This document shows positions 33,334 through 64,000 of a stretch of DNA of 64,000 nucleotides, in pieces. The translations under genes and the position numbers were made by a program. How positions within the stretch are numbered: the first letter of the stretch is position 1; each line of letters starts with the position of its first letter. The notes beneath the pieces were generated by a model, which was not told the DNA's origin, did no database searches, and saw nothing but the letters and a program-made list of their open reading frames with translations. The DNA lies in NCBI GenBank assembly GCA_024704765.1, contig JAKMXF010000221.1:124001-188000 (forward strand), in the 5' to 3' direction. The stretch comes from Oopsacas minuta (Eukaryota; Animalia; Porifera).

Positions 33334-34404
33334 TCATGAGTTCCTCAATAGAGGGCGGATATTAGAATAATTGAATCTGTATTGTTGGTTTCTGTTTGAA
33401 TATTTCAGGATAAAACAAGCAGCAGAATAAACCCAGAGTGGCAGACCATATGACACAAGCCACAAGAACAAGAAGATAGGATCTATATATTTCATAACAT
33501 CCTTTATGAGGATGGCAGTAGGGCTGAGAGGAAAAGCTTGACTGAAACATAATACAGCTTTAAATCCTGTTGCGAAAAACAGTAGACACACAAGGATAAC
33601 AGAAATAAAGAGAGATAAGATCAAAAGTATCCTGAAAAATTTATAATGTTTGTAAGCAAGAAGTTGGTTGTTAAAGAATATTCTATCTGGTGAATGCCAC
33701 ATGAGTTCCTTAACATTCATCTTAAGTACACGGGAGAGAAGGAGACTTTCCTTCACAAATAGAAGCCAATTAATTATGAAAAATGATGGGATTAACAAGA
33801 ACATTATTGGATAAGTGTAAATGGTTGAAGCTAGCGCAATGAGTGCATATTGTAACAGTAGCCAAGCAAGATATTTCATAAGAACTGGTCTCACTGGATG
33901 CCGGAGGTATCTTAAAGAAAGGAACCGAGTTAGGACTGAGAGTAGGACCATTAAAAGAATATATGTTGCATTGTCCAAGTCGAAAAAAACTATGATGAAA
34001 GGATGTGAATAATACTTCTCAAAAGCGTAATTACAAGTTAAATGAAAATCCCAAACTCCGAATAGAGTAACATTTAGCTCTTCTGGTTTGGGGATTAATA
34101 TGAATATTAACCTAGACAAATAGGTGAAGACGAATTGGAAAAGTTCTACTCCACATATGCTTATAACAATAACAAACTTGGCCATATGTGATTTATAATT
34201 GTACAATTCCATAGATTGAGAGAGAGATTGAACATCTTTGTATAACGGATGGAAATCTGTCCTGTTTTTAGTAATATTATATTTCTTGATAGTTTTGTAC
34301 AATTCTATACAAATCTTTACTAACCAAAATACATTGAGTATAATAGTAGCAAGTATTGTGATAGCAGTTAGACCGAAGAAAACATAACTAAATATTTTAA
34401 ACAT
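33334..34404 (-). CDS. Orphan 7TM protein, family member 1
   Basis: Seven hydrophobic segments, basic loop after TM1, motifs WLVKICIELYKTIKK and YKSHMAKFVIVISICGVE. Confidence 0.75.
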   Translation of the reverse strand: MFKIFSYVFFGLTAITILATIILNVFWLVKICIELYKTIKKYNITKNRTDFHPLYKDVQSLSQSMELYNYKSHMAKFVIVISICGVELFQFVFTYLSRLIFILIPKPEELNVTLFGVWDFHLTCNYAFEKYYSHPFIIVFFDLDNATYILLMVLLSVLTRFLSLRYLRHPVRPVLMKYLAWLLLQYALIALASTIYTYPIMFLLIPSFFIINWLLFVKESLLLSRVLKMNVKELMWHSPDRIFFNNQLLAYKHYKFFRILLILSLFISVILVCLLFFATGFKAVLCFSQAFPLSPTAILIKDVMKYIDPIFLFLWLVSYGLPLWVYSAACFILKYSNRNQQYRFNYSNIRPLLRNS

Positions 34405-35002
34405 TTTAGTAGAATTATTATTAAATATAAATGTCAGTCTTTATAGTTTACGAGAAGATAATTAAGAAATTAATAATAATATTTATGATATCACCTCACA
34501 TAGCTACACGTATAATTATCAAGTAAGGTTACTATGCTAGAATTATTCACTATTAATCATTCGTCGAATTTGCACTATATTCCACGAACTTAGTCATTAG
34601 CCAAAATTAACTATTGAAAGATATAAATAGATAAAGTTTGATTGCGTGTAAATTAATAATGTAAATACTCAATACTGTAATATTTCTGAGAAAGAAAGTG
34701 TAAATATCACACATTCAATATATTGATTATACCTTTGTAATAAAATTTACATCAGTTAATAAGAAATCTGATAAACAGGAGTGCTTTCCCTGGTGTAACA
34801 GGGTAAATAATGTTATGTAGTCTCCCTTTATTAACGAAAATATAAAACATTGAAATCACTCAATTAATATTATTATCTCACACATAATGTTAAATACAAT
34901 CAGCTATAACACTAACTAATACGAATATTCAATTCACCAAAAAAAAGCATCCTTACTAGAATATAATTCTCTAGTATGATATCTAAAAGAGCGAGGGGTG
35001 TA

Positions 35003-36700
35003 TTAGTCCTCACCTACTAGTGCTATCAATAGTCTCTTATAGTCTCCAGATGTATCTCCCTTGATCATGGTACTAAGAGATTTCTTGTACATCTTCATAA
35101 ACTCGAGTTTTATCTCTACCATGTCCACCTCACAACGGGATACGACAATCCTGATCAAGGTGTTGTCATCTGTTCCCGCTCCTTTCATGCTACGATAGAG
35201 CCTCTCAGCAAAGAAGGCAGGAGGACTTTGTACAACCTTGACAACAGCCTGCATGCCCATTTTGAGGTCACCTGACATTTCGCGGTTGATAGAATTCGCA
35301 ATATCTCTATGAGCCACTTTCTGGTACGCGTCAAAAGTAGCTCTGAGCTGTGGGTAGCTTCTCAATGCTAGCACCCGATTGAAGCATGACTCATCAGTAC
35401 CCCATTTCTTCTCTCCGGCGTCATGCAAGTCCTTTGCTTCTTTATCCGCCATAGCTTCGTTGATTACTGACCCCTCATCTCTAGCACCTTGACACAGAGA
35501 CACTAACAAACGTTTGAAATGTCCACTGGTCTCTGACACAAGATCTTTCTCTAGGTCTCGTGAGAAAAGAGTTTTGTAATGTTGTTTGATGTTATTAACC
35601 TCGGCATTAGATTTGGTTGTTAGGATCTCTATCAAGGCCTCCTCATCTGTTCCCAATCCTTTCATAGAAGATCTCAAACATTTACAATCGTAGTCTACGG
35701 TAGGTTCAAACATGGCAACAACTGAATCCTCAAAATTCCCACTCAGCTCAGATTTTAGATCTCGTATCAGATCTTTGCCGAACATAACTTTGAACTTAGT
35801 TTTTATTTCAATCCTCTGTGAGTTGCTCCTCTTAGAGATCACGTTGATGATAGCTTTTTCATCAGTTCCCAGTCCTTTCATTGCGGTTCTTAACACTTGT
35901 GCGTCTGCCTCAGCATCGAAGGGCCGTGCAGGAACAACTGTGCCATGAGTAGATGGTGTCGATGGTGTTGCACCCATGGGAGTCGCACCATGAGGACTAG
36001 CTCCAGGCATTGGCTGTACCCCTGCTGTGTACTGTCCTCCATAACCAGTAGCAGGTGGTTGCGAGGGGTAACCAGCTGGTTGTGACGTGTAATCAGCTGG
36101 AGCTTGAGAGTATCCAGGAGCAGGAGGTTGTGCGGGATAGCCCGGAACTGGAGCCTGTGCTGGGTAACCTTGGGGTGCCTGTCCGGCATATGGTTGAGGA
36201 GCTTGTCCGGTAAATCCTTGTGGAGCTTGTCCGGCATATCCTTGTGGAGCTTGTCCGGCATATCCTTGTGGAGCTTGTCCGGAATATCCCTGAGGCATTT
36301 GACCAGGATATCCTTGTGGAGATTGCCCAGGGTATCCCTGAGCTTGAGGATATCCTGATGCTGGTCCTGGGGGTTGGGAAGGATATCCACCGGCAGGACC
36401 CTGAGGGGGGTAACCAGCTGCAGGGTATGCAGGATTGGGTTGAGGGTATCCAGACTGAGGGGGATAACCAGCAACGGGAGGAGGCTGGGCGGGGTAACCA
36501 GCAGGAACAGATTGGGGAGGGTATCCGGAAGCAGGGGGCTGTTGAGGATATCCAGGGGGGTAACCTGTGACTGGAGGTTGTCCAACAGCTGGAGGCTGTC
36601 CCGGGTACCCAGCCTGAGGTTGGCCTGGATAAGCAGGCTGCTGACCGTAATTCATAGCATAAGGGTCTTGCCCTGGGGGAGGAGGGTAACCACCATACAT
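35003..36700 (-). CDS. Annexin A7/A11-type with long GYP/Q-rich N-terminal domain
   Basis: Four annexin repeats ([16 protein letters not shown]) and an N-terminus with 8-aa QGY(A/P/S)GQAP repeats. Likely start MYGGY at 36700. Confidence 0.95.
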
Positions 36701-37164
36701 AGCTATTAATATAATTTTATACAAATTACTGCTACCTAATATTTAGTATGATCTCTCAGAAAACGAAAATATATCTTAAAGTGTCCTGATGCGATTAAGC
36801 GAGCCGGTTGTAATTATTATATGTAATTATTTAGTCAAAAAATAATGCCTACATTCACTATAAATCTAACTCATACATACTCCTACAATTGATAGGATAT
36901 AGTTTCATAAATGGGAGATAATTCCTGCTAGATACATAATACAATTGGAAGAATGCATGAGTTTAACCCAGGGATCAAGAGATCCAGAGAATTCTATGTT
37001 GAAGCTAACCCTATAGACAAATATTATATTAGTAACTAATAATCTAATCTAATCCTCATACAAAATATAAATATACAAATAAACTAGTAAATAGAGCACA
37101 ACAGGGGTAAATAAAGATAGTAGCTATCATAAATAGGTAGCAGAGCAGATACGTACTAAGATGC

Positions 37165-38142
37165 TCAATCTTCTCCAACCAGAGCTAACAAGAGCTTCTC
37201 GTAGTCTCCTGAACAATCACTCTTTATCATTGTACCAATACTCTTCTTATAGGTCTTCATAAACTCGTCATTGATTTGTACCATGTCGATTTCGCAGCGA
37301 GACACGATAATTCTGATCAGAGTGTCATCATCTGTCCCAGCCCCCTTCATAGAACGATAAATCCTCTCAGCGTAGAATAAGGGAGTATTCTCTACTACCT
37401 TAACCACCGCTTGCATAGATTGCTTGAGGTCTCCGGACATTTCCTTATCTATTGCTGACACTATGTCTCGCTTGGCTAACTTCCGATATTGCTCGAACGT
37501 AGCACGTAGTTGAGGAAAGCTACGTAGGGCTAGCACCTGATTGAACCGGGATTCATCTGTCCCCCATTGTCCCTCACCCGCATCATATAGATCTTGTGCT
37601 TCTTTCTCGGCTTTAGCCTCATCCACCTCTGTAACTTGATCTCTTGCACCCTGACAGAGAGATATGAGCAACCTTTTGAAATCTCCACTCAGTTCAGAAT
37701 CTATATCCTTCTCTAAATCTCTTCCGAATAATTCCTTGAATTTAGCTACAACCTCTTGCATCTGTTCATTGCTCTGAGGGACTATTATTTCAATTAGTGC
37801 CTCTTCATCTGTCCCAACACCCTTCATAGCCCTCCTCAGAGAATTGGCTTTAAAGTCAACACAAGGCACGAACAGAGACACAACTAAATTTTCAAAGTTT
37901 CCACCTAGTTCAGATTTTAAATCCTCAATGAGATCTTTCCCAAAAAGAACTTTATACTTCTGCATAATTTCCAACAGCTGTTTATTCGATCGCTTGCTAA
38001 CAACCTTAATAATGGCTTTCTCGTTTGTACCCATCCCTTTCATTGCTTTTCTCAGCACCTGGGCGTCAGACTCAGCATCAAACCCATCCACAGGGACTAC
38101 TGTACCTTGAGTGTCAACGGGGCATCCTAAAGCGCTTGCCAT
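37165..38142 (-). CDS. Short-N-terminus annexin, tandem paralogue
   Basis: Four annexin repeats ([32 protein letters not shown]); close similarity to the adjacent annexin core. Confidence 0.95.
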   Translation of the reverse strand: MASALGCPVDTQGTVVPVDGFDAESDAQVLRKAMKGMGTNEKAIIKVVSKRSNKQLLEIMQKYKVLFGKDLIEDLKSELGGNFENLVVSLFVPCVDFKANSLRRAMKGVGTDEEALIEIIVPQSNEQMQEVVAKFKELFGRDLEKDIDSELSGDFKRLLISLCQGARDQVTEVDEAKAEKEAQDLYDAGEGQWGTDESRFNQVLALRSFPQLRATFEQYRKLAKRDIVSAIDKEMSGDLKQSMQAVVKVVENTPLFYAERIYRSMKGAGTDDDTLIRIIVSRCEIDMVQINDEFMKTYKKSIGTMIKSDCSGDYEKLLLALVGED

Positions 38143-38278
38143 ATCTTTTAGTTATAGATGTAGGAAATTGAATTTGATGAATTAGTAAATGAATGGATTC
38201 TACTAAGCAAGTACATTGAAGAGCTTTTATAATTTCCTAGAATCTTGAAATCAATAGCCTCGTGATGTTTTAGAACTG

Positions 38279-38339
38279 AAAAATGGATACCTAGATCCTG
38301 ACCATGAGTTGCATGGGCTGGATCTAGGTATCCATTTTT
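38279..38339. repeat. 61-nt hairpin with a perfect 20-bp stem
   Basis: AAAAATGGATACCTAGATCC ... GGATCTAGGTATCCATTTTT, plus an inner CCATG/CATGG stem. Confidence 0.9.
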
Positions 38340-39052
38340 GAAATACGTATTATGTAAACATCATGAAACACTCAAGTGTACAGGTTATGTATTTTGAAAA
38401 TAATATATACGGTAAGCAATTAGCTATTACGACAATGATTATGATGACCTGATTTGATTATCGCTTATAATATGAAAGAGGGTTATGTGTTATTATTACA
38501 ATCTTTGCAATAGCTTAAATCACAATTAAATACTCGCCACTTATTACAATCAACACGCATAAACAACTTGTATAAACAAGTAGTTTTGGAAGGCTACAAA
38601 TTCGAATCCAGTAGTAATATATATTCAGAAAGACTTCAATTAATTCATACGTAAATAACAGTCATGTTCATTAGTCTTATGAGATAATCTAGTATTGTAC
38701 TAGACATTGTGAATAATGATATGGCTAGTGGAAAAATTCACAGTCGTTGAATATAGATGAGTTAAAACTCACGGTGAAAGACAGTCCCTGGTCCAATAAT
38801 ACTAATGAGTTAAAATCTCACGCAACGGAGCACTGATCTAAACAATATTGGTTGCAGAACCTGGTTCTTTGAAATTTAGTGAATTGTAGTATATGATGCA
38901 GAAATACTTATATAATACAACTCATGGACCTAGAATACTCCAAATAAGAATAATGTTACCAAATATGGTATCACTTGTCTAAGATAATTAATAAAATGTA
39001 TACGAAATTGATCTGACCAGTATGTGAGATTGCATGCAAGTGTTTGTAGCCA

Positions 39053-42000
39053 TCATCTGGGGTCGTTGATTCCTGTTTGTGCTCCACTACTTGTGTTATC
39101 ATTATCAGAATCTGAACTACTAGAGTCATCACTGTCATTTTGTGTTGGTAAACGACTTGCTGTCTTCTCTCTTTCTGCTTCTAACGTTTCAGCATCTTTG
39201 TCCTTAAGGTATATAATTTTATCAAATAATTCTTGCTTTTTGTGAGTTGAAAAACTGAAGAGAGGTTGTGAGTTTTTATAAAAATGGAAACAAGGGAGCT
39301 TCAGGTGTCCTTGTAACCCTCTGAGCATAGGTATCGTTTGGAGATCAACTTTCATAAAAATAATTTCTCTATTCATTCCGAGATCAGCATTGATACTATC
39401 AAATACACCCTCAAACTCTTTGGAGGCTTTAGAGCCAGAAGAAGTACACATTAATACCACCAGAGTCTTAGGAGGAGCCTTTTCTAAAATGTTCAGAGGA
39501 TTAATCCGATTTCTTATTATTGGATTAAATATATAGACTTCGGTTGCAAGATTTGATCAAATTATGTTTTCATTAATTCAACAACTAAATATTATTTTAA
39601 CTGTTACCTAGTTCCACACTGTGATCAGTTGCTGTTGTGAATACAATAGTAGGATATACCCTCCCCTCTCCAGCCAAGATTTGTCCCTTCAGTGCCGATA
39701 TTTGCACCAGAACATTACCCCCTTGACCCAAGGAACAATCTCTTAAGCTTAGAGAATGATCACTTAAGGATGTCTGTGAGAATGGTATGGAGAGGGTAAT
39801 TTCTTCAATGTTAAGCTCTGAGATTGTGCAAACTTGGGAGTAGAGTTCGTGAACCTAAGAGAGTAGGTAATTATCAAATAAAAAGTAGAGTTACATTTGT
39901 GGAGATTTGATTAAATTAGTGGAAAGATGTTAGAATTAACAATTATCGCAAACTAATACCAGTGGTTACAACAGCGGTTGTTACTGCAAGTGTAAGTTAC
40001 CGTGAGATAACAACATTGGAAGTGATTGCTTAAGATGAACGTTGTACCTATACTCTATTTGTGGAGGAATTTGGGTTTCGTGTGTGGAGCAACTTTGGCA
40101 CAGATTAGCATAATGATTATTTATCAAATTAATGAATTAACGAATTGGATGTGCCTACTAACAAAGATAGTAGTACATATGTTACCAACTACGGACAGTG
40201 AAATTTCGTACTCCTATCCATAGTAACTTATCAACTCAAGTCATACTTAATTGAAAATGCATTGAGACAAAGTAAACTTCTTCTGACAAGTGACAGGGCA
40301 TATGGCAGTGATAATGAAAATTCAGAAATTAGATCTTAAATATAAGCTAAAGGCAGTTACTCTTACAACCTGATTGATCCAATAAATTGCATTACGACAA
40401 TATGCACCTTAAAATTTTTCAGGTTTCTTCTCGAAATAGTTATTAGCACACTTTAGAGGTTATAGAAGAGCACCCGGATGTTTTGAATGACGTCAGTATT
40501 TTAGGAAATTAATTGTCGCTACTCTATATTCCATTTATTGAACCTGGTACTCAATGAGTAGTAATCCATGACACATGTACACATGAAAAGTGTAATTTGT
40601 AATTTGATGATCCTAAAAGTTATATATTACCACCCACTAGCCAAATTACGATACTACACGTATATATCATGTTGTTCTGCAAATATTCTTTGATCTAACA
40701 AGCAAGCAGGCAAAAGTAATTGATACCAATTAATTAACCAGATCATCTCAAGGATCAACCAAAGGATATATTATTGGCTGCCACCAGAATTTGCTCCTCC
40801 TACTGGTTCTAGTAACAATTAGGAAGAATTTCATTCAAATCATTTAATAATGATAATAGGAAATATAAAATTAGCAAATCACGACTATACGAGAAGAGTT
40901 AAATAACCAATTACACTCAAATAAACGCATTTCACCTGAAGCTAAGAATCTCAATCAATTCAAATGAATTTGTTAAGTTGATTCAGAGAATATACAGTAA
41001 ACATGTTTGTTAATCAAGAATAGAAGTGGTAGATATTCTGATGAAAGAATTCTATTGCGATTCGATCACACAAGTAAGTACCGAGGTTAATTGCCAAATA
41101 GTGACGAAGTTCATTAATGAATAAGAGTTGAATATCCATAATAGTTGGAAATATGAAATGTGCATACGAAAACATGCACAGCAGGACAAATTACTGAGAA
41201 CAATTAAATAATAGAATTATTTCCTATTATTATGATAAAGATGGATTGAACAAAGAGGATAAGAGAATAAAAGAATAAAAGAGATTAATATGAGTTTAAA
41301 ATGTCATAGATAATAATTTAGCGACTTTTAAAATATTCAAAATATGCAATTGCATATTATTATACAGCTACGTAATTAATTCAAAGAATAATCACACTTA
41401 ACAGACTGCTGTAGATTCACAGCTGATTGACACTTAAATGGATTAACGTGAGAGACCTTGTTGATACAACATAATTATTTGTAAGGGTAAAGTTCAATTA
41501 AATACAACAGTAAGTTTATGCGTCAATGTGTCTGTGAATTAAATATTTACATTTTTAGCTCTAGAGGTAAGAAATACTGAGAAAATAACCAATATATTAA
41601 ATGATTTAGTTTTTGAGGAGAAAGATTATAAATTAATATTAGGCAATAACTTTGAAGTACTAAATATAATACGGAATATTTCCAGGTAGATTAATATCAT
41701 GAGGAAGCTCTGCAAATCAATAATTAATCTATCACGCAAGGTTTATGTCGCTGTGTTTATGGTATCAAACAAATGTATCCCTCAGGTCTCTGGGGAAAAC
41801 AATGTGGTGGTCGCATTTTATACCCTGGGTGTATGAGGCAGATGTACATAACTTTGTATTACAAACAATTTTTTATAGAAGCGGGTAACATATCATGTCA
41901 ACTGCTTAGTCGTAGATATCTTGCTTTATGAACCATCTCCTAAGGGCAGACTAGTTTAACATAAACATTAAGCACAACAGATCCCTCTAGTTCCATCCCT

Positions 42001-48000: not shown

Positions 48001-50603
48001 AAATAATAACATTATGTATATAAATAAAATCTAGTGAGATAAGATTAAGTAACAACGAGAAACTTTCCACCCACAAGTATACACTGAATTACGCAAATGA
48101 GTAAACAGACAATTAATCAATAAAATAGAACGGAAATTGGTAGATTGTGGGGTATAAAATAAATCGAGATAAATAGGAATTACACGATTTAACTAAAATG
48201 ACAATTCTAGAAGTGTATTTCATCAATTGGTATATGAAGCTAGCATACTTCGGAAACTTTGCATATTGCTGCTTCTTGCTAACTTGGATATTTGCATTAG
48301 CTTACGAGGTGCGAATAACTTCGAAAAAGTTGAAACGACTCAATTCTCTAGCTCTTGATAATCCCAGTCTTTGGGAACAACATTATTCCAATAATATCTT
48401 CAAACATATACTAATGATAATTATTGTATTGCTAGAGATGGCAATAACTGGGTTACTCCAAATGGATGCATTGTATATTCCAACACATTTCTCATTATAC
48501 AAGAATGAAACTGACATAATTCAGCCTACAACGACAGATTCATCTATCCTAGACTGTATAGGACAAGATAATTTTGTAGGAATAGGAGTGGGAGTGTTTA
48601 GTGTTGAGATGTCAGTGTACTTGTATATAATATTGACTTACAGTTTATGTCTAAACTTCTACTCAATGGTTTTCGCCAACAAAATAAAATTGAAGAAACA
48701 AATAAAACCGACTATAACAGGTTATATACTATCTACATCGATAATAGCCCTCATGTTATCAAAGTATACTATAGTATTGGGTATATTTGGTTATGTAATA
48801 CTGTTAGTATCAGCTGTCCTATACTTGGTTATAAGTCATAAACGATTAATTAGAACAATTCAAGCTAAGAGATTTGATGTTTATCAGGAGAGATCAAAAT
48901 GTCAGGCCAGGAGAATCGATAAAGAACTTAACTATGCAAGGAAGATAGGTGGGTTTATCATAATAATCGGGATAATTAGAGTTGTATCCGTATTCTTCTC
49001 CGGTTCCATCGATGCTATTATAATTCCCATAGTACAAAATCCGTGTTTGATAGGATATGTTAGTAATGTTCAAAACATTTATCCACAAATTGATGGGATT
49101 ACTCAGACAATTGCTCAGGTTGTTTTTACACTCGGAAAGATTGTAAATATGTCGTATGTATTGCTTATATTGAGTGTAAACATAATTGTAGTTTGTATAT
49201 ACTACTACCAGAAGAAAGTACAATTACAGAATATTGTCAATAAGAAATATACAACTTATGGTATGACACTGAGAAAAAGATTGTTAGAGTAATTATACGT
49301 ATTTTTTATATGCAAATTTAGTAATTATGTTGTTCTAAGTTAATTTTAAAACATTTATTAAATATTATGTGGGTGTGCATTAATTTAAGCGAATAAGCGA
49401 AAAATGTGAGTAGAAACAAACCTTGCTCGTGCTGATTCTTTCTTTTCAATCATAGCAGCTCTGAGCACTTCTTCCCTCTGTTTCTCAAGGAACGCGTATC
49501 TCTCCCCAGAACTCTCCTGGTACCTGGAAACCAAGGGGACCGAGTGAACAGAGGGGAATGAAGAGGAGCTAGATGGAGACGGTGTAGGGATAGTAGGCGG
49601 AAACTACAAATATATAAAATAATAAAGTAGAGTCAAATAGTTTTAGAATGAATAATTAGAATAACCTGTCTGGGATTAGCATTGATCCACTCTATCGCTT
49701 TCTCTACACTGGTGTTGTCAGTTTGAATTAGAGCTTGAGAAGCTTGCTCAGAAGTGTAACCCATATCCAACAAACCTACCAAAAGACCTCCTCTTGGTAT
49801 TGTAGTGGAGGGTACTGAGGGAGGGGCAGCAACTGGGATAGTCGGATTCGTGAACACATTCCCACTTTTCTCCGTCCCAGTTAGTTTAAGTGTAGAGCGT
49901 TCTGGAGCGGAGACAATAGGTTGTCCTGTACCTTCACTCAATAAAGATAACACCACGGATACATCGATTCCAGCAGGCAGGATAAGAAACTCGTTTTTTT
50001 CATCTGTTTGAAATCCAATGACAAATAGTAGGAATTGTGCTGGTTCGATTTCCCAAACATATCTGTAGAAATAAACACTAGGCCTAAACATATAACAATA
50101 CTTGTAACAGAGCTGTGTAATTAAAGTATTGTTCTGAAGCAGCAATAGAAACGCTGGTAATAATAGTGATTTTATTATGATACAAAGAAATACTACAGAG
50201 ATCCCTGATCCATGTGTATACCCATTACCCCTATAGATCCGCAAATATTAATATATGTTAATAATCTTGATTCCGCACTGTCAGACAGAACATTTGAATA
50301 GAAAATTTCATATGAAAAGTCAATTCTTGAATTGAGTAGGTTCGAAGTTCAAGAGGTGTTTATTATAATACACAATTCATATATACATACAAATATCAAT
50401 TATCAAACAATTGAGTTTAAGGTAAATAAAGTTAAGTACCTTCTAAATCTGTCGTTAGATAATTTAATACTCCTAAACTTCTCTACACCAGGATTGGTAG
50501 CTATTTTCTGAAGAATTCGAATAAGCAAGCTGATAGACTCACGGGACGATTCTTGGTCTGATAGAGATCTGATTTGGGAAATACAAAGACGTGCATCTTC
50601 CAT
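39053..50603 (-). CDS. PUB-UBA-coiled coil-UBX-thioredoxin-fold protein (543 aa); exons 50603-50440, 50062-49666, 49603-49422, 46224-46014, 39854-39608, 39483-39053
   Basis: All five introns are GT-AG with matching phases (2,0,2,0,1); total 1632 nt. PUB LLIRILQKIATNPGVEKFRSIKLSN; UBA LLDMGYTSEQASQAL..SVEKAIEW; UBX VSIRVRLPNGS..PEAT|VHELYSQV; TRX fold LEKAPPKTLVVLM..FMKVD..LPCFHFYKN. Confidence 0.8.
39960..40340 (+). pseudogene. Possible decayed NHL/beta-propeller-like fragment inside the long intron
   Basis: One frame reads YTLFVEEFGFRVWSNFGT and ELDVPTNKDSSTYVTNYGQ*NFVLLS with several stops, loosely like an NHL repeat (P.GL.V...IYVTD.GN..V). Confidence 0.2.
42215..44080 (-). CDS. Nucleoredoxin-like (no CxxC) + Lys-rich + coiled coil + PH domain protein, nested on the same strand in intron 4 of the PUB-UBX gene
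   Basis: LSGKKFIGIYYAANWIPVS (WCxxC site degenerate), KFEIEEIPILVVLD; coiled coil; PH domain GWMHKRG..WRNRYF..LYYYKS..GTISI..LELRAPNETTRDSWINSI. Intronless 626-aa ORF; likely start MSDET. Confidence 0.85.
   Translation of the reverse strand: MSDETSNLEIRDGESYFEWINRNTKIVNKENEQIPFEVLSGKKFIGIYYAANWIPVSKNYLQIIDNAVNAMEAREGCSMGMLLASCDVNNQNMMEFVSTANITFPIIPPDSKFTEALKEKFEIEEIPILVVLDVENNSIVDKVDKLKLESLLDKETPEIMCDTWLGISNHSPEESPSAERKLIGKEKKQQAKAEKERLKKEAAEKKKQDKFEKVEQKKVAKLEKQKSKEIKKRKKSGLQEDTISVNSQIPGDDNGPMSPVSQTTIDREISPVLNATGTEEARVSVPTTPLAYNVVRDGNDDLSDSSGCSTDTPLEKRKKKKRSLVLWGKTDTPKQKDKEQDAQVAALIQKNNELEHQISELKQNKQEQETETKELHEQVDSLNGVIADKDNALKALEYRNSELSSQLLESKRNINNISEEKDILVIELSGLKEDFSVAKEELKNAQNHVEDIELEKQVRETEHQKFVEMTELNGWMHKRGRKSFTRGMWRNRYFQAGEGFKLYYYKSPKMKNLRGTISIGDIIKVEPVENSKGTLLTISTDSSTLELRAPNETTRDSWINSITFLSHYCKKYHASSERISGEKPDSETTIDETATKQKKDGSTTEITKAPETNEISPVTVN
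45724..45777. repeat. 27-bp direct repeat, 2 copies
   Basis: ACTACCAAGATCTTGTCTACATCAGAC followed by ACTACCAAAATCTTGTCTACATCAGAC. Confidence 0.9.
48198..49292 (+). CDS. Orphan 7TM protein, family member 2, nested antisense in intron 3 of the PUB-UBX gene
   Basis: About seven hydrophobic segments; motifs WIFALAYEVRITSKK and YSNNIFKHILMIIIVLLE. Confidence 0.75.
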   Translation: MTILEVYFINWYMKLAYFGNFAYCCFLLTWIFALAYEVRITSKKLKRLNSLALDNPSLWEQHYSNNIFKHILMIIIVLLEMAITGLLQMDALYIPTHFSLYKNETDIIQPTTTDSSILDCIGQDNFVGIGVGVFSVEMSVYLYIILTYSLCLNFYSMVFANKIKLKKQIKPTITGYILSTSIIALMLSKYTIVLGIFGYVILLVSAVLYLVISHKRLIRTIQAKRFDVYQERSKCQARRIDKELNYARKIGGFIIIIGIIRVVSVFFSGSIDAIIIPIVQNPCLIGYVSNVQNIYPQIDGITQTIAQVVFTLGKIVNMSYVLLILSVNIIVVCIYYYQKKVQLQNIVNKKYTTYGMTLRKRLLE

Positions 50604-51552: not shown

Positions 51553-52016
51553 TGCCAGGTCCCAATGCGAATACTGTGTACGCAAGCCGTGTAGCGCGAA
51601 CAAGCCAAGCACAGCTCGTAGTGGTATAATTCGCGACATCCCTTTTCAAAGCGTATACATCACTAATAATATTGACGGTACGAGTCTCTGAGAGTATTGA
51701 AATAGGTCTTGGTTCCTAGCTGCTTTCCCCTGTCAGGCTTCGCTATCTGGATGTATTTCTACTTCCTGACCAACAAAACACTAGCGATTTAGAACCACTA
51801 CGTCCACGAAACGCTAGCTATTCGGCGTATTTATAGCTAGACATTGGGTTTTTTAGCAGGACAAAATTTTTCTTAGCTATATATATATATCGTATCGATA
51901 TTATGAAAGATTGTATTTAAATTTATAAACTAACATAATAATGAAATTTTACCTTCTTTTACCCACCCACCTCAAGAAATAATCATTGAATAGAGCTGTA
52001 GCACGAATTCGTGCGA

Positions 52017-53708
52017 ATGTCAGCTCGTAAACGAACCCAGTCGTCAGAGCCAGACCCAGGGTCTGACCCTCCCTATACCCCTCCCCCTAAAGACACAAGA
52101 GACATAGAGGAAGAGAGGTACCAAGAGTGGTTAGCTAACACACGATTTGTAAAGAACCTCCTAAAAGCTATTTTCGGTATGCTCTTCATTTTCCTGCTTA
52201 TTTTCGTTGTAGCAATTCTGTTTGGTGGTGCTTACTATGAGAGCAATTTCTCTAGCAAAGTTACCAAGGGGAGTCCCGCCCGCTGGTCGCTTGGACTAAA
52301 CCAACAAGTTCCCTCTGATGTAATCTCCCTATTTGAGATTTATGACTCAGATGCTAGTGGAGCAATAGAACCATGGGAGTTCAAATATATAGCAAAGTTG
52401 CTGAACGAGAGGAAGGATGATCCATTTGTGTTTCAAGAGGAAATCCCCGAGGGAGAGGGGATAACTGTATATGCTGAATACTCGCCTATAGTCAATAGCT
52501 CTATGAAAACATTTCAAGATCAGCAGAAGTCATATTTCAAAGGGTTTATGGCTGAAAAGACGCACTTCATTGGACTATTCAATTGGATCAATGCTGAGTA
52601 CCCAAATATGCTACATAGTCAGAAGAATTTCAGATCGTTTCTGCCAGCACATGCTTCCTGGGAGGTTGGTATGTCCTATCGGTTGATCTCATCTATATTC
52701 GGAGAGGACAGAGAGGAAATTTACAATTCTAACCGTTACAATGCTCCTCAACCATCTGGCAGAGAGATTGTGTTCTTCAAACTTCTACAGCAGTTCCATC
52801 ATAACGTGTTCCTACAGAATAGATTCGGCCCTCGTGGAGGTGTAGCAATGATCCGAGCAAAAGCAGGGCCAATAATAGAGGTTGTCTTTCGTATCCACGC
52901 AGAATATCAGCTAAATGAACACCCTCTGCACCCATTCTGGTTCAGCCCTGCCCATTTCACAGGTAACCTCGTATTCAACACTGACACAGACGAAGTGCTT
53001 CAATTTGAGCTATACTTGCCTTCTATTCGTAAACTGAATGTCGATATGGAATGGATAACGGGATCAGATGAACTGGAAGGAGAGAAGATGGAAGTAGATA
53101 TCGGGTACACTTCTGCTATGAAACTCTCTACTAACCAAACATTCGAAATCCCCGCTTGGGATCATGAGAAAACTAAAGAAGAAGCTACTATCGAACTGGA
53201 CCGTGTCCTATACCCTTTCAAGAGAATTCCCTATATAGATATTAGAGACGCGGTAGACACAGCTCGTGTGGAAAACAAACTGGTACACTCCATTATAATG
53301 TGGGGTTCACTAGATGACCAGTCATGCTGAGGATCAGGACGCACACTGCGGGACGGGCCCCTCGCAAGTGATGTCGTCCAACTTACCCTCAAAGAAAATT
53401 TCATTTCTTCCTGGTCACTCATTGTGCATCTAGAAGATTTGATGGCTAACTCTTCTGTCAAGCAAGAAGTAAAGGATCTCCTTAAAAAGACTATGGATTC
53501 TTACGAATTTCCTGTCCAGTCTATGGTGATGAGACCTGATACTGGTGACATTGTTCATATGATTAATGCTAACAAATTAATGGAGTTTAGAGATAGCGAA
53601 GATGCGATCAGAGTCAATATAGATCCTCTTTCTTACTCGTACAATGAATTTCTTCTGGAAGGAATGCGGAAAGCGAGAGAGGAGCAAGCTCCAGTTATCC
53701 CTGAATAA
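52017..53708 (+). CDS. SELENON: Selenoprotein N with in-frame Sec (UGA 53328-53330)
   Basis: TM anchor; EF-hand YDSDASGAIEPWEF; FRIHAEYQL..PFWFSP; WGSLDDQSC-UGA-GSGRTLR continues in frame into the 53424-53708 ORF. Confidence 0.95.
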
Positions 53709-57081: not shown

Positions 57082-57876
57082 ATGCTTCCATTGAGAATAA
57101 CGAGATTCAAATTCTGCTCCCTTCTAGCTCGCCTCAATCCTCTCCACAGATTCATGGCTACAGCTAAGAGTACAGATGTTGGTTTCCTGGGTCAACAAGA
57201 CTCCATAGCTATAGATCAAGAACTCGTGAATACATATAAATTCACGGTAGAACAGCTGATGGAGGTAGCAGGGCTAAATGTTGCAGATATTGTAGCAGAC
57301 ATTTACCCAAAACAACACGAATCAGATAAAGTATTAATCTGTGTGGGTCCGGGACATAACGGAGGAGACGGTTTGATTGCTGCTCGCCATCTCCTGTCAT
57401 TCGGAGTAAACCCTGTCATATTTTGCCCTAAGAGAGCAAAGAGTATAGTTTTGGAGAGGCTAATAGAACAGGTGGAAGCTGTGAGTATCCCAATCCTAGA
57501 TACCCTACCATCTACTGATACTATTTCTAAGGAGTATAGCTTGGTTCTAGACTGTCTGTTCGGATTCAGTTATAAACCTCCCATTAGGAAGCCTTTTGAC
57601 GATGTTCTGAGGTCACTTGTCAATGTCAAAGTTCCTCTCATCTCACTTGATATTCCATCAGGCTGGGATGTAGAACAGGGACCAGGAGATGTAGCAGAGG
57701 ACATGAGACTACAGCCTGAAACTCTCATCTCCCTCACTGCTCCCAAACTAGGTTCCAAACACTTCAAGGGGAAGCATCACTTCCTCGGTTTGAGGATGGT
57801 CCCACCCCAACTGCTAAAGAAGTTTGGAGTAAATTTCCCTCTCATTCCAGGTACTAAGCAGTATATTGAGATATAA
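57082..57876 (+). CDS. NAXE: NAD(P)H-hydrate epimerase (YjeF_N)
   Basis: QLMEVAGL, GPGHNGGDG, DCLFGFS, SLDIPSGWDVE, LISLTAPK. Confidence 0.95.
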   Translation: MLPLRITRFKFCSLLARLNPLHRFMATAKSTDVGFLGQQDSIAIDQELVNTYKFTVEQLMEVAGLNVADIVADIYPKQHESDKVLICVGPGHNGGDGLIAARHLLSFGVNPVIFCPKRAKSIVLERLIEQVEAVSIPILDTLPSTDTISKEYSLVLDCLFGFSYKPPIRKPFDDVLRSLVNVKVPLISLDIPSGWDVEQGPGDVAEDMRLQPETLISLTAPKLGSKHFKGKHHFLGLRMVPPQLLKKFGVNFPLIPGTKQYIEI

Positions 57877-58014
57877 ATTTAGATATTGAATTATTGAGAA
57901 TTTATAGTTTTAGTTGATTCAATATAGCGGTGGTTTATACAATGTGGTATGTATAATATGTACAAATTGAGGAATCAATCTCTATCTTTAATTTAATAGA
58001 ACATTGTAGCCCCA

Positions 58015-58953
58015 ATGAAGCCAGTATTAGCAGACAAATACACACGAAATGTTACAACTGTAGATTACATTACAGCTAGTGTAGCTGATCGGACTCAGCT
58101 TTCTACACTAGTATCTGAATTCAATGATCTATTGCCTCTTCCTCCTCGATTTTGTCACTTAAAGAGAGTTAAGTCTACAAATATCGAAAATAAAAAGAAG
58201 TATTACATATTAATGGTTCCTTTCAAACAATTACCAGCTGGTGTTTCTCTGTTTACTTGTGTGAAACATTTACTACCATCTCTCCCGATAGAAATAACCA
58301 AATGCTTAGGTGATATAACTGTTGTTAAGGTTCCTGACTACATACCGCTTACCTCAATGCAGTATACTTATGCTAAGAATCTCTGGCCAACAGTGTACTC
58401 ACATAATCCAAAGATCGAAAAACAATTGAGTAAGAATCCATTTTCTGCTACTGAACTCTTACGTATGAAAGAATATATGAGAAGTGCTCTACAGTTAGCT
58501 AATAATGCTAGGTTAAATGGAGCTCTCCCTGTAGCCTCTGTTATAGTAGATCCTGTTAAGAAGCAGATATTAGCAGGTCAACACCATTCTGTAGACAGCT
58601 GTCTAGATCATTCGATTATGCGATGTATACAAGATATAGCTAAATTACAGAAACCCATTGTTACTGGTTCAAAACGAACTATTGATGACAGTGATAATCT
58701 TAATATTTCTAATTCTTCAGAATATTATCTATGCACTGGTTTGGAGGTGTACACAACTCAGGAACCTTGTGTTATGTGCTCTATGGCTCTTGTTCATGCT
58801 AGAATTAGTAAGGTTTTCTATGGAATGGCTAACATAGAGATGGGTGGATTGGGTAGTGTTTATAACATACATTATCAAGAGGGCATTAACCATCATTTTG
58901 ATGTTTATAAAGGATTTCTAGAACAAGATAGTATACAATTATTTCAGAAATAA
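58015..58953 (+). CDS. ADAT3: tRNA adenosine-34 deaminase non-catalytic subunit
   Basis: HLKRV, LWP, HSI in place of the catalytic HxE, YLCTGLEVYTTQEPCVMCSMALVHARI, GINHHF. Confidence 0.92.
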   Translation: MKPVLADKYTRNVTTVDYITASVADRTQLSTLVSEFNDLLPLPPRFCHLKRVKSTNIENKKKYYILMVPFKQLPAGVSLFTCVKHLLPSLPIEITKCLGDITVVKVPDYIPLTSMQYTYAKNLWPTVYSHNPKIEKQLSKNPFSATELLRMKEYMRSALQLANNARLNGALPVASVIVDPVKKQILAGQHHSVDSCLDHSIMRCIQDIAKLQKPIVTGSKRTIDDSDNLNISNSSEYYLCTGLEVYTTQEPCVMCSMALVHARISKVFYGMANIEMGGLGSVYNIHYQEGINHHFDVYKGFLEQDSIQLFQK

Positions 58954-59434
58954 TATACTCAGCCCTAAACTAACTATTTATATGATTCAAAGATACACGG
59001 TTAGTTTGATTGCTTGCTTTTAAATAGTTTTCTAATTTAAGTATTATTCATATTATTATTATTGTTTGAAATGATTGATTAAACTTAACAGTTGCTGTTT
59101 AAGAAATGTTGAACTAACAAAAGTATGTATAATGAAAACAGTTATTTTAAAGATACATAAATCTAGGATGTTTGTGCTCATTTTCAATATTTCTTAACTT
59201 CTCTACCTCATTTCTGTTATATGTAGTCTGTAAATAAATAGAACATTTAAATTCTAGTCAAAAGAGAGTGGTTTTATTATCGATCTTGATTTCCGGAATT
59301 GGTAATTTACATTTTTAGTTACAACCCGATTTCTTTATTGTTTTCAAATTGCTCTAATTGTTCCAGCAGCCTTTTCATTTAACTCACGTCCTTATTAACT
59401 CTTAAGAGAGTCCTTTGCGAACCAGCTAATCAAA

Positions 59435-61631
59435 ATGGCAAGTGAAGTACAAGACATAGAAAATGTAACAGAAGAAGTTGATAAATCAGCGGAAGAAGCA
59501 CCTCTCTCTATTCCAGTTTCTTTAGAGTTGTTGACATTAGTGTCAGAATGGAGAGCACAACATGGGTTGAAGCATGAGGATTATACTCGCTACAGACGGT
59601 ATTCCATCCACATTTATCTTAATGATAATTTATAATAACTAATGATCATTCTTATACACAAATTAGTTATCTATCTTGACAATAATTTTTCAGTATCCTT
59701 GTAGTTACAATTATGCAACCAGTTCACTGTATTTATATTTTATATTTTGTGTTTAGTTATTGCTCTCGCAAACTTATGAGAATTCGTCGAACTCTTCATT
59801 GCCAGTGCACACAAAAGGGTAAATACAAAATAGCTCCAGTTCTCACTCCTGATGACCTCACTCAGGAGAAACAGCTGTTTGTATGTCTGGTGAGTGCTGA
59901 AAGGTGTTGGAGTTATGCCATGGAGCTTAAGGTGACAGCTGCACAAGAATCCAGACACAAACATAGGTACATTCACAATATTTTGCTGTTGCATTAAACA
60001 TTACTTATATCGTATATATGTAGACAAGTGAGAAAGCTAAGCAAAGCTGTTAAGCACTCAGAAGAATTGTATACTCTCACAGAATCAAATAGAACAGATG
60101 CTCGCTCTAAGCTAGAGACTTCTGCATACAGAGACTGGTTGATAGGAACTCTCTCTCTTGAGAAATTAGAATGGAGTAAAGCTGTACACAGCTTTTCCAA
60201 TTGTAAGGCTGTTTATGAACAGCTGAGTGCAGTAGTGTCTCCAGGACAACAGGTATGCCTGACAGATATATATTATTAGGATATGATGTATTGTCTCTGT
60301 AGACCTTCTACAAGGATATAGCTTCACAATTAGAACTCCACCTACGCTACTGTCGATATAGCCTAAAGCTGGGAACTGAGGCAGGTGGTGAGACAGAGAG
60401 TGCTCTCCTGGAGCTGAGGAGCTCAGATCTGAGTGGACCTCTGGCTGACAAAATCGAAGAAGTGTTGAGACAAACACGTGAGAAGGCTGACACTGGTATA
60501 TCAGAGGTCAAGTGGCTAGGTATCATTTCTGCATTGTATATTATGTATTGTATTATTGTATTTAAATATTAGGCAAGAGTGTACCTATCCGTTCTGGGCG
60601 TGTTCACGACGCGATCAGAATTATTGAAGAGGGAGGAAAAGAGGTAGAAAAGGCGACAGGAAGAGAAGCTAAATTGAAACATTTCGCTAGACTACTGCTA
60701 GACTGTCAAGAGGCAGTACAGAGTATAAAAGATGAGATTGGAATAGAAAAGCAGTCTAAACAGCTACAAGAGAAAGAGCATAGATTGGAACATCTGGGGG
60801 GATTATGTGAGTCATAACTATTATTACTATTACTATATCTTATAAATTTATTCATATATTATCCCAGTGGATTACATCAACTATTGTAAACTAACTCATA
60901 GCACATCACGTAGTCTCCTGATGCTAGAACAACTGATTAAACCGGATAGAGGGGTAGAGGGAGGTAGACCTGAGGAGCTAGTTAGACTCTATGATATTCT
61001 ATTACAGAATAACTTAGACTTAGTAGCTATACAGGGAGTAGAAGAAATGATGGGAATGGAGTTGTCTGTAAGACGAGCTGAATTTCAGGTTTGTAGCTAA
61101 CATCATTGTAGTTTATTATTATTATTTATGAGTATGTAATAGGCACATAGATGTTTCTATCTTGCAGAAGTATATCTAACAGCTGCACGACTTAATGAAG
61201 GATTAGCTTTACTTGAGAAAGCTGCAAGACATGTAACAGAGCTAGAAAAAGTGTGTGCAGATTGGAAAGATACTCGTGTTACTAGTATATTAGAAGATAG
61301 TGAAATATTGAATGGAGACATACGCAGTAAGAGATGTGCTGCTCTTGCTTCTCTCTGTCTAGGCAGTAGTGCCGGAGATATACTGACAGCACCTTCTCGA
61401 CCTAAAGGTCATATAGCAGATTGTCTAGAGCATTATATCGTACTAGATTCAACAGATAAATTGGAAGATTTGCAAATAGTTTCATTTCCACCAGATTATA
61501 AGCCTGCACCTTGTAAACCATATTTCTTTGACTTAGCATTGAACCATGTTACCTTTCCAGAGCTAGAGAGTCACTACTCTAAGAGGGGAGGAGTATTGAG
61601 CTCATTGTTCAAGGGTATCTGGTCTTCTTGA
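59435..61631 (+). CDS. SRP68: Signal recognition particle subunit SRP68, about 7 exons
   Basis: QHGLKHEDYTRYRR|YCSRKL, AERCWSYAMELK, RPEELVRLYD, FPPDYKPAPCKPYFFDLALNHVTFPEL. Confidence 0.93.
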
Positions 61632-61779
61632 AGATTTAGAATAATAATCTAGTTATGTTGTATGCATTTGCTCACTAGAATAATTCGTATATTCTGTATA
61701 GGGAATTTGGCCTTCTTATCCGTAGTGTTGAGCAATTGTCTGTTTACTTTCTCTTAGCAGTTTGTATATTTCTCTAAGA

Positions 61780-63136
61780 ATGGATGAAGCTGGCAATACG
61801 AATTATTATAAAATCTCTGATTTCAGAGGAGAGGTAAATACAGTGTTTAATATCAAATATGAAATATTGCCACAAACATTCAAATATTTTATTTAAATTG
61901 TCTTCTATAGAGCTCGTTTGAGGTTGTTAAGTGTAGATTAACAAATGGTTTGGAGATCGTCAAATGTATATATGAGTTCTTTTTGGTTAGTTTGGTTAGG
62001 TTTCTATTCTCTCAAATATTTGTTATTCTGAATGTTCGTTCCTGCAGCAACTCGCTGGTCTTGAAGAATCATTTGCTCATGGATTACAGAAACTCCTCAG
62101 GAGTGCTTCTTACACGCTACACTCCAACACTCTCATGCAGTGGTTAGGACAAGATCCTTTCGAAGAGACAGGGTGATCACAATTAAATACTTTAAGCTCA
62201 AATGACTGTTTTGAATACCGTTATATTATTTTTAGTACTTTAAAAGAAGCTTGGAATTTAATTGGAGAATGCCTTTCTCTCACTGCTAAGCATCATCTCG
62301 AGAAGGTAGCTACGAATATACATGTTACTGGTACAAGAATTATAGAAATAAGAAATATATTAATTGATATTATTCAGGCTTATTTATTGAAACAAACTGT
62401 CGCAGAACCTCTCAGTGAGACCAAACAACAGTTAGATGATATTAAGAAGCAAGTATGTTATATATTACTGAACGGATAATTTGTGTTACTTTTCCGTTTC
62501 GTTAGAATCTTAAAGAAACAAAGTTTGCATCGACAAAGAAACTAAAGCAACAGTTGAAAACAGTGAGTATAATTGTATAATATATTACTCCTGATGTTAT
62601 GCATCTGTCAATCTAGGAAAAATTAAAGTTTGAGGCGATTACTACAGAGTATAGCAAACTGAGAGGACAACTTGATTTCCCAGGTAAATCCATTTTATAT
62701 TTGATTACTTGCTAGCTAGAGTGAACACGTTATTTTCTTCACTTCTTTCCAAAGAAAGAGTGGACAGGATGTCATCTAAGAATCCTCAGAAGGTTTGATC
62801 TACTATACATATAATTATATTTTATATTGCATCTTTCTTTTTCCCTTTGAATGTGTTAATTGTACGTTTACACGTATTTTATTGCTACATATTCTGGGGA
62901 AATTGGGAGAAGGTGACCCTGTTCATTATATTTGAACCGCATTAGCTTGAAGAGCAGATTAATGTTATTGAAGCACAGCTCCAAGATCAAGAACATCTGT
63001 AAGTTTATTATACGCACACATCTGATGTTTACTGTAATAATTATTATATGGATGTTTTGTTAGATGTACAAAATTGAAACAAGAATACATCATAGCGGAA
63101 AGAGGGGCTAATCTCCAACTTGAATATGTTTACAAT
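61780..63136 (+). CDS. F-BAR/FCH-domain protein, about 10 small exons, 3' end unresolved
   Basis: Spliced translation SDFRGE|SSFEVVKCRLTNGLEIVKCIYEFFL|QLAGLEESFAHGLQKL..GTLKEAWNLIGECLSLTAKHHLEK|AYLLKQTVAEPL matches the FCH consensus. Last recognised donor is GTGAGT at 63137. Confidence 0.75.
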
Positions 63137-63402
63137 GTGAGTGGGCTATTTTTGCATAAGATATCATATCTTATCAGTATATGAGTAATATCACAGTATA
63201 AGAGTAATATCAAAGTACATAAGTAATATCATATAAGTAATATCTTTGAAATAGTTATCACATGTAACTCCCAATTACATAAGAGAAATTTGTGATTATA
63301 ATTATTACCACAGCATGTAATCAAATTACTTTACGATTTTTCCCTTTTCAATGTTGTATATATGATAAATCATATAACTATTCTATCGATTTTTAGCTCA
63401 GA

Positions 63403-64000
63403 ATGAATTATACACGAATCCACCCTAAAATAATTTTGACAGTATTCTCAATTTCTCTTATTATATGTATCGTATTATTAATATTTTATCTTTTCTGGTT
63501 TGTTTATTTCGCGAACGAGGTGCGTTACTTGAAGAAGAAGTTGTGGAGGATAAAACAGGGACGTAGCAATTATGAAAATGACACTCTTTTTATCAAATAC
63601 GAATCTGAATATATTAAGAACAGACTCATGTTATTCGTGACTATTCTTGAACCATTATCCTTTCTTCCAACATTCATAGAAATATTAACTCAGGAATTTT
63701 TTATGGATCCTCTGGAGCAAAGAGAAATTCTAATTAAATGGGTGTTAATTTTAAGTCAGAATGTTTGGTTTTCTCTCACATCCATCATCTACTTAACTTC
63801 GATCTACTTACTCAATCTGCTAACATTTTACCAGATTAACCTACTGCAGAACACGAATGATATAACTTTATTAAAACGAAAACTACGACATTTATTAATA
63901 TTTTCAATTATCCTCGTAGTCATGGCTTTTAGTGTAATTGCCTCCATTATCTCACAGTTTATTGCCGTAGTCCTTATTTCATACTATACGGTTACTCTGA
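63403..64000 (+). CDS. Orphan 7TM protein, family member 3 (runs off the window; not in the ORF track)
   Basis: Open frame of 199 codons to the window end: MNYTRIHPKIILTVFSISLIICIVLLIFYLFWFVYFANEVRYLKKK..YESEYIKNRLMLFVTILE, carrying both family motifs. Confidence 0.8.
   Translation, partial: MNYTRIHPKIILTVFSISLIICIVLLIFYLFWFVYFANEVRYLKKKLWRIKQGRSNYENDTLFIKYESEYIKNRLMLFVTILEPLSFLPTFIEILTQEFFMDPLEQREILIKWVLILSQNVWFSLTSIIYLTSIYLLNLLTFYQINLLQNTNDITLLKRKLRHLLIFSIILVVMAFSVIASIISQFIAVVLISYYTVTL

Follow-up and report, generated by a model that had tools for sequence, protein, structure and literature searches.

A 64,000-nucleotide stretch of the genome of the glass sponge Oopsacas minuta (contig JAKMXF010000221.1, G000:C221:124001-188000 in our numbering; hereafter the window) contains three single-exon genes, P1, P2 and P3, which probably represent ancient, positionally conserved members of an undescribed, lineage-restricted superfamily of putative receptors with a G protein-coupled receptor (GPCR) fold. 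The best reading of our data is that the proteins of this superfamily are encoded by single exons, comprise approximately 330-400 amino acids arranged as seven helices, and occur in O. minuta and related sponge assemblies. A first-pass annotation of the window, made from the sequence alone, had described the three genes as intronless members of a dispersed family, and all three open reading frames (ORFs) were indeed present and uninterrupted, with P3 running beyond the end of the window (Table 1). The assembly analyzed comprised 61,460,524 bases in 365 contigs; the published genome is described as approximately 61 Mb in 365 scaffolds, with a G+C content of 36% and 16,413 predicted proteins (PMC10280926).

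Homology, synteny and selection

Pairwise comparison of the three proteins by BLASTP yielded best E-values of 0.53 for P1/P2, 0.30 for P1/P3 and 0.004 for P2/P3, in agreement with the little overall similarity noted in the first-pass annotation. Profile-profile comparison with hhalign was performed using four profiles built from the P1 subfamily (A1), the four sequences of the P3 subfamily (A2), the P2 orthologues (A3) and 43 paralogues (A4). This analysis joined A1 to A2 (98.3%, E = 2e-14, 255 columns) and A3 to both A1 (95.9%, E = 6e-9, 310 columns) and A4 (98.5%, E = 1.8e-15, 293 columns). The match of A3 to the four-sequence A2 profile by itself was weak (32%), and the connection between P2 and P3 therefore goes via the larger A4 profile. 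Reversed or column-shuffled profiles used as controls reached at most 4.8%, with E-values of 0.008 or worse, and a comparison of A4 with the canonical class A receptor ORF of the same genome, which doubles as a negative control for composition-driven matches, gave 0.2%. Hidden Markov models (HMMs) of the P1 and P3 subfamilies reciprocally matched each other's members, and many paralogues were matched by both. A 47-row profile also matched P1 (E = 4e-78), P2 (E = 1e-87) and P3 (E = 5e-53); the three proteins are themselves rows of this profile, and it is the hhalign comparisons and HMM cross-matches that provide independent evidence of membership. In a quick maximum-likelihood tree, each gene clustered with its own external orthologues (Shimodaira-Hasegawa-like approximate likelihood ratio test support of 99-100) and long branches parted the three clades. 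Taken together, these sequence comparisons establish P1, P2 and P3 as homologous and place them in three deep clades of one superfamily.

The copy number of each gene was examined using phmmer searches of the genome. P1 had 34 matches, mostly uninterrupted ORFs of 350-400 amino acids, and P3 had four others, comprising three intact paralogues and one fragment. No paralogue of P2 was found by phmmer across the genome, where P2 is a single-copy gene; seven full-length 1:1 orthologues of P2, with 44-72% identity, were identified in other ENA/Logan assemblies.

Orthologues of P1, P2 and P3 were all located on a single 320-kb ENA contig (ERZ25071281 ctg49461), in the same order as in the window. 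The gene order common to both runs from an aminotransferase and a caspase through P1, two annexins, a thioredoxin-PH protein, P2 and selenoprotein N, and then through YjeF_N, a deaminase, SRP68, P3, a coiled-coil protein and PTPA. On this contig, orthologue identity was 53% for P1 (P0061) and 57% for P2; the P3 orthologue is tandemly duplicated, with copies 60% and 47% identical to P3. The neighboring genes were 65-86% identical, except for the caspase (48%) and a small ORF (36%). A third assembly carried three P3-type copies on one 503-kb contig, compared with one copy at this place in Oopsacas. Since orthologues are found in the same gene order elsewhere, the three genes are old rather than recent copies or insertions.

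Nonsynonymous divergence (dN) between orthologues was 0.29-0.36 for the three receptor genes compared with 0.09-0.12 for three neighbors. The ratio of nonsynonymous to synonymous divergence (dN/dS) was approximately 0.1-0.25, a rough estimate because dS was saturated (1.1-3.3). Thus, P1, P2 and P3 appear to be under purifying selection, with amino acid change approximately 3-fold faster than in their housekeeping neighbors. The rapid divergence proposed in the first-pass annotation was therefore overstated for these three genes, which have syntenic orthologues and a low, if rough, dN/dS, although they do evolve faster than the genes around them. The same annotation had proposed insertion into introns. 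As judged from ORF layout and the gene calls of the other species, this was not supported for P1, which lies between separately called genes, or for P3, which lies 1.8 kb after the last SRP68 exon. A UBA-domain exon is found on the minus strand just downstream of P2, and P2 could thus sit within or adjoining a minus-strand gene.

Family signature, predicted fold and family size

The first-pass annotation had defined the family by exact motif spacing, with W-x6-E-x5-KK at the end of the first transmembrane helix (TM1) and Y-x5-K-x10-E through TM2. Both motifs were present in P1, P2 and P3 exactly where they had been placed, and their residues occupied identical columns of a merged 51-sequence alignment (the 43 paralogues plus eight P2 orthologues). 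These shared columns, together with the profile-profile joins, show that the common motif is not due to chance. Conservation across the alignment narrowed the signature to four positions. The TM1 Trp was found in 34/43 paralogues and 8/8 P2 orthologues; a basic residue at +13 from this Trp in 34/43 paralogues, with Lys in 6/8 P2 orthologues; a Lys or Arg at the start of TM2 in 37/43 and 8/8; and the mid-TM2 Glu in 40/43 and 8/8. Carried by 48 of the 51 sequences, this Glu surpasses every other residue of the family in conservation. The remaining motif residues are common to P1, P2 and P3 but are poorly kept among the paralogues and are no family feature: the Glu at +7 occurred in 7/43 paralogues (7/8 P2 orthologues), the second Lys in 14/43 (5/8) and the Tyr in 8/43 (8/8). 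In the first motif of P1, family-wide conservation is accordingly limited to W27 and the basic residue at position 40. In the second, K76 lies at the membrane edge and E87 mid-membrane; the P2 counterparts K69 and E80 were invariant in all eight P2 orthologues. The TM2 Glu is predicted to lie approximately 11 residues in from the inner membrane edge, near the depth of class A D2.50, a correspondence of depth rather than a residue-by-residue mapping.

Other conserved features were identified outside these motifs. A Cys before TM3 (31/43 paralogues) and a Cys at the end of TM6 (33/43) were both present in 8/8 P2 orthologues; this pair, C124 in outer loop 1 and C286 at the TM6 end in P1 (C120/C283 in P2), joins outer loop 1 to the TM6-TM7 region. 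A TM7 Pro was present in 27/43 paralogues, without N or Y context, and TM6 had no Pro. A conserved C-terminal tail motif ends in P-L-L. The reported absence of DRY and NPxxY was true of the family as a whole; in the P1 subfamily, however, an R-Y lacking the preceding acidic residue is invariant at the cytoplasmic end of TM3, and this R-Y is absent from P2 and P3.

Structure prediction and fold search, which the first-pass annotation had proposed as a check, were performed on P1 and P2. The AlphaFold2 model of P1, from a 16-row alignment, had a mean predicted local distance difference test score (pLDDT) of 82.8 and a predicted template modeling score (pTM) of 0.80, with seven long TM helices; the model of P2, from a 47-row alignment, had a pLDDT of 81.7 and a pTM of 0.80. 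Searches with VIA-align revealed that the top 50 matches of each model were all GPCRs. For P1, these matches had Z-scores of 13.5-16.7 over 232-272 residues (root-mean-square deviation 3.6-6.4), with class A first; for P2, Z-scores were 12.6-14.6, with adhesion, class A, B, C and T receptors intermixed. Across both models, the top matches covered GPCR classes A, B, C, F and T over 226-272 residues. In a Foldseek search of the PDB, all top rows were GPCRs with a probability of approximately 0.99 and TM-scores of 0.25-0.55.

Topology was examined using charge and glycosylation sites in the 51 sequences. The net charge per protein was +15.9 in the predicted inner loops compared with -0.75 outside, and N-glycosylation sequons were 3.5-fold denser outside (2.28 versus 0.65 per 100 residues inside), with the short N-terminus included. 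The orientation is clear, with the N-terminus outside and the C-terminus inside, and agrees with the GPCR-like topology suggested by the first-pass annotation. Inner loop 1 is predicted to form a helical hairpin of approximately 36 residues, and outer loop 2 to comprise approximately 6 residues.

The size of the family was estimated by searching the genome with the 47-row profile, which gave 209 first-look candidates and, among these, at least 113 scored loci. Even the lowest-ranking match listed had an E-value of 4e-17, so the true number of loci is higher. Nearly all loci were single open frames of 350-430 codons, with a minority containing stops. The count of at least 113 loci, set against the 16,413 predicted proteins, corresponds to approximately 1% of the gene set and bears out the suggestion that the family is expanded. 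A search of 1.84 billion database representatives with the 43-row profile identified 753 clusters (50% identity) at E ≤ 0.001, and the matches sampled fell into two groups, O. minuta proteins and ENA contigs 0.2-1.2 Mb in length. Given that P2 is single-copy and was found in approximately seven other assemblies, 753 clusters approximate eight genomes with about 100 copies each. This number fits, but does not prove, a family limited to O. minuta and related assemblies. A word-index search with the 47-row profile returned only eight proteins and was uninformative on taxonomic range.

Public models for members of the family appear to contain errors. In KAI6660685.1 the start is placed 45 codons too late, with the loss of TM1, and KAI6645829.1 ('Fibrillin-2-like isoform X23', 826 amino acids) contains two stretches that match the family and may fuse neighboring genes. 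On another contig (G000:C365, L056), two receptor ORFs were found in tandem.

Putative function and class membership

To compare the two faces of the predicted helix bundle, conservation was calculated for the inner and outer halves of the TM helices, using region boundaries that were taken from the models and are approximate. In the P1 subfamily, the inner halves were better conserved than the outer halves (0.33 versus 0.17), as they were across all 43 paralogues (0.23 versus 0.13), and outer loops 1 and 3 were the most variable parts among paralogues. A variable outer half over a kept inner half is what would be expected if receptors varied their ligand pocket above a shared transducer face. 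Among the P2 orthologues, the inner and outer halves were equally conserved (0.58 versus 0.60).

These features suggest how the proteins may work as putative cell-surface receptors. The ligand would be held in that half of the helix bundle which faces outward and differs from paralogue to paralogue, and binding would probably also involve the TM6-TM7 loop and the long outer loop 1, which bear the conserved Cys pair. The signal would cross a core containing the near-invariant buried TM2 Glu, a possible equivalent of the D2.50 ion site of class A. On the inward side, a conserved and strongly basic surface, made up of the inner loop 1 hairpin, the R-Y at the end of TM3 in the P1 subfamily and the extended TM5 and TM6 helices, may then contact a transducer, for which the eight G-alpha proteins reported for this species are the most likely candidates. 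We infer G-protein coupling from the predicted GPCR fold, the basic inner face, the extended TM5 and TM6 helices and the presence of eight G-alpha genes. P2, which is single-copy and has both faces equally kept among its orthologues, probably retains one fixed ligand, and the P1-type clade, with its many copies, has the appearance of a chemoreceptor repertoire undergoing diversification. The family resembles the expansions of vertebrate TAS2R, nematode sr and Amphimedon Rhodopsin-group receptors (PMC4302439) in its intronless genes, tandem clusters, copy numbers of tens to hundreds with some copies decayed, variable outer and kept inner half, and restriction to one lineage; TAS2R structures were also among the structural matches (Z 12.7-14.6). 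The likeness does not extend to sequence, where there is no relation, and unlike recent tandem copies the three genes in the window are old, dispersed and syntenic. The animal also differs, O. minuta being without neurons or sensory cells of the usual type.

Several observations weigh against the reading of these genes as members of a lineage-restricted GPCR-fold receptor superfamily. The Foldseek E-values were just 0.04-0.2, and structural Z-scores of 12.6-16.7 exceed only modestly the values that the mere arrangement of helices in a bundle can produce. The P2 model is not independent of the P1 model, as its alignment contains paralogues. The predicted inner loop 1 is unusually long for a GPCR. 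Pfam scans of P1-P3, the 43 paralogues, the eight P2 orthologues and database-named paralogues returned nothing relevant; 7tm_1 (PF00001) in particular was unmatched by P1-P3, the paralogues and the orthologues at E-values up to 1-10. A sequence profile search of the PDB gave no receptor, the hhalign score against the genome's own canonical class A receptor was the 0.2% noted above, and the class A hallmarks DRY, CWxP, NPxxY and a disulfide between TM3 and extracellular loop 2 (ECL2) are not present. Restriction to glass sponges is itself inferred from synteny and from O. minuta being the only species-labeled match. Given the modest Z-scores and the alignment rows shared by the P1 and P2 models, we read the models as predicting a GPCR fold, without class assignment. 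With no Pfam or PDB sequence match for any member examined, the description of the family as orphan was upheld. UniRef automatic names conflict for two paralogues, 'G-protein coupled receptors family 1 profile domain-containing protein' for one and 'Gustatory receptor' for the other, and neither name has Pfam backing.

Two placements of the family come into consideration, as a separate class or as a branch of the Rhodopsin family that has drifted. One possibility, which we put forward tentatively, is an unrecognized GPCR class with no sequence relation to GRAFS or other named classes, which would have replaced the Rhodopsin family as the main chemosensory repertoire of glass sponges and would combine fast-evolving clusters with slow single-copy members such as P2. 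Pfam 7tm_1 matched two loci only over the whole 61-Mb genome, one solid and one weak (Table 1), which is strikingly few for an animal. In the demosponge Amphimedon, 126 Pfam-detectable Rhodopsin-family genes form sponge-only clades (PMC4302439).

That the family is instead a hyper-divergent class A (Rhodopsin) branch, corresponding in glass sponges to the sponge-specific Rhodopsin groups known from demosponges and drifted beyond HMM reach, appears rather unlikely, although several features point in this direction. The best structural matches of the P1 model are mostly class A, led by NTSR1, EP3, GPR35 and CB2 at Z-scores of 16-17 over approximately 240-265 residues. As in class A, the proteins are predicted to have seven helices with the N-terminus out and the C-terminus in, a buried acidic residue in the middle of TM2 at a depth close to that of D2.50, extended cytoplasmic ends of TM5 and TM6 and, in most members, a TM7 Pro; the R-Y at the end of TM3 in the P1 subfamily and the 'family 1' name given to one paralogue by UniRef agree with this. 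The 126 Rhodopsins of Amphimedon (PMC4302439) also compare with one solid 7tm_1 locus and more than 100 family copies here. Other evidence runs the other way: 7tm_1 was silent for every member scanned at E-values up to 1-10, hhalign did not join the family to the class A ORF of the same genome, and adhesion, class C, Frizzled and taste-2 receptors scored within 1-2 Z units of class A. The differences extend to single features. The family has a Glu in TM2 where class A has Asp; P2 and P3 lack DRY, and the family lacks CWxP and NPxxY; the family Cys pair links the first outer loop to the TM6-TM7 loop, whereas that of class A links TM3 to ECL2; and ECL2 comprises approximately 6 residues while inner loop 1 is a hairpin of approximately 36 residues, compared with about 6 in class A.

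We also considered a GPCR-like fold in proteins that are not G-protein-coupled surface receptors but, for example, endomembrane seven-transmembrane (7TM) proteins of the GPR137/THH1-TOM1/PRRT3-4 kind, or proteins with another role in transport or scaffolding. An ESM Atlas search gave nothing useful for P1; for P2, the nearest clusters in language-model feature space were THH1/TOM1, PRRT3 and GPR137_N (0.88-0.92), with a recognition value below the level usual for known families. These proteins share with P2 a 7TM architecture without extra domains, and the C-terminal P-L-L tail motif could be a sorting signal. HMM support for the relationship was absent, in that neither P2 nor its orthologues matched PF06454 or PF27607 at E-values up to 10, no family member matched the Pfam models of these families at the same threshold, and the single match of PF06454 across the genome fell outside any ORF. 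An approximately 100-fold expansion, together with a variable outer and conserved inner half, is typical of ligand receptors and not of housekeeping endomembrane proteins, and would be left unexplained. We therefore regard an endomembrane role as improbable and the resemblance of P2 to these proteins as a lead only, which the Pfam searches did not bear out.

The remaining alternatives fared worse. 7TM ion channels of the insect gustatory and odorant receptor kind (7TMICs), with which the first-pass annotation had suggested a comparison, are hinted at by the UniRef name 'Gustatory receptor' on paralogue KAI6660543.1. Structures of odorant and gustatory receptors are available in the PDB, and yet the best 50 structural matches of both models were all GPCRs; no match to Pfam 7tm_6 or 7tm_7 was obtained at E-values up to 10, and the N-terminus is outside, the opposite of 7TMIC topology. 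The N-out orientation excludes the inverted topology and, with the fold search, makes a 7TMIC identity very unlikely. Chance motif resemblance among hydrophobic, AT-rich ORFs that share no origin and may in part not be genes at all would agree with the non-significant BLASTP result in two of the three pairs but has a negligible probability, being refuted by profile joins whose controls failed to match, full-length orthologues in up to seven other assemblies, conserved synteny, purifying selection and confident models. The GPCR-fold receptor superfamily thus remains our preferred reading.

Neighboring genes and possible implications for glass-sponge signaling

The coordinates of the three genes, their motifs and other features are presented in Table 1. 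The window also contains several genes unrelated to the family. The selenoprotein N gene has one exon with an in-frame TGA inside an S-C-U-G motif; the frame continues for 125 codons past this TGA to a TAA at 53706, and the other assembly holds an orthologue with 79% identity. An Rfam search for a selenocysteine insertion sequence (SECIS) element in the 900 bases after the gene found none. The order of the two tandem annexin genes is conserved in the other species. The first has an N-terminal extension of approximately 250 residues, rich in Pro, Gly, Tyr and Gln and like that of annexin A7/A11, and its repeats yield a spurious ORF in another frame. Between positions 3707 and 28889, the window is dense in mostly long-exon animal genes, which were read from ORF translations only and encode a tubulin-tyrosine-ligase-like protein, a BRCT-repeat protein, a C2H2 zinc finger, a tetraspanin, a class III aminotransferase, a caspase and a single-pass membrane protein. 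The AT content of the window peaks in the 4 kb 5' of P2 (G+C 0.29-0.31), where no long ORF is present.

Table 1. Positions of P1, P2 and P3, their motifs and other features. Positions are those of the window unless a contig or locus is named.
Feature	Position	Strand	Description
P1	33334-34404	minus	Intact single-exon ORF, 356 amino acids; member of the largest subfamily of the superfamily
P1 first motif, W27 to K41	34282-34326	minus	Spans the TM1 end and the beginning of basic inner loop 1
P1 second motif, Y70 to E87	34144-34197	minus	Start of TM2; E87 at 34144-34146
P1 R165-Y166	33907-33912	minus	Cytoplasmic end of TM3
P2	48198-49292	plus	Intact single-exon ORF, 364 amino acids; very divergent superfamily member
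P2 first motif, W30 to K44	48285-48329	plus	
P2 second motif, Y63 to E80	48384-48437	plus	TM2 Glu E80 at 48435-48437
P3, part in window	63403-64000	plus	First 199 codons of a 330-amino-acid single-exon gene; small subfamily
P3, full gene	G000:C221:187403-188395	plus	Ends 392 bases (including stop codon) past the window end
P3 first motif, W32 to K46	63496-63540	plus	
P3 second motif, Y66 to E83	63598-63651	plus	TM2 Glu E83 at 63649-63651
P3 orthologue, first tandem copy	L067:10001-10984		60% identity
P3 orthologue, second tandem copy	L067:12846-13814		47% identity
KAI6660685.1	L007:1414-2493	minus	Family member with late start in public gene model
Solid 7tm_1 locus (L064)	G000:C111:666929-667849		Canonical class A receptor, 612 amino acids, with DRF and NPIIY
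Weak 7tm_1 locus (L065)	G000:C321:186570-187337		In a tandem pair of 7TM ORFs of a different family
Dense long-exon genes	3707-28889		
First annexin	35003-36724	minus	Tandem with second annexin
Spurious ORF in first annexin	35890-36585		231 amino acids
Second annexin	37165-38142	minus	
AT-rich segment	44000-48000		
UBA-domain exon	49633-50244	minus	
Selenoprotein N	52011-53708	plus	In-frame TGA at 53328-53330

Descriptions of this family were sought in the published literature. The O. minuta genome paper reports eight G-alpha genes and lists no receptor repertoire (PMC10280926); the literature on Oopsacas that we examined describes G-alpha subunits but not an orphan 7TM family, the Aphrocallistes genome paper does not mention receptors, and no such family is named in the searched passages of a 2025 survey of GPCR families that includes the Oopsacas proteome. 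What the window contributes is that three clades that BLAST cannot connect are united by profiles, making the family wider than its tandem clusters suggest, and that just four motif positions form the real family signature. Some members are also old, single-copy and syntenic, and would be better first targets for de-orphanizing than the fast-evolving clusters, with the mid-TM2 Glu as the residue of first choice for mutation.

Glass sponges are syncytial animals that conduct action potentials and respond to stimuli. To our knowledge, almost nothing is known of their receptors. With more than 100 GPCR-shaped genes invisible to Pfam in a genome with one solid Rhodopsin match, the family would be the obvious candidate for chemical sensing in glass sponges, and it would be a useful extreme example of sequence drift within the GPCR fold. 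If it does constitute a separate GPCR class, members that evolve slowly and exist as one copy, P2 among them, may mediate a conserved endogenous signal in an animal that is syncytial and has no neurons.

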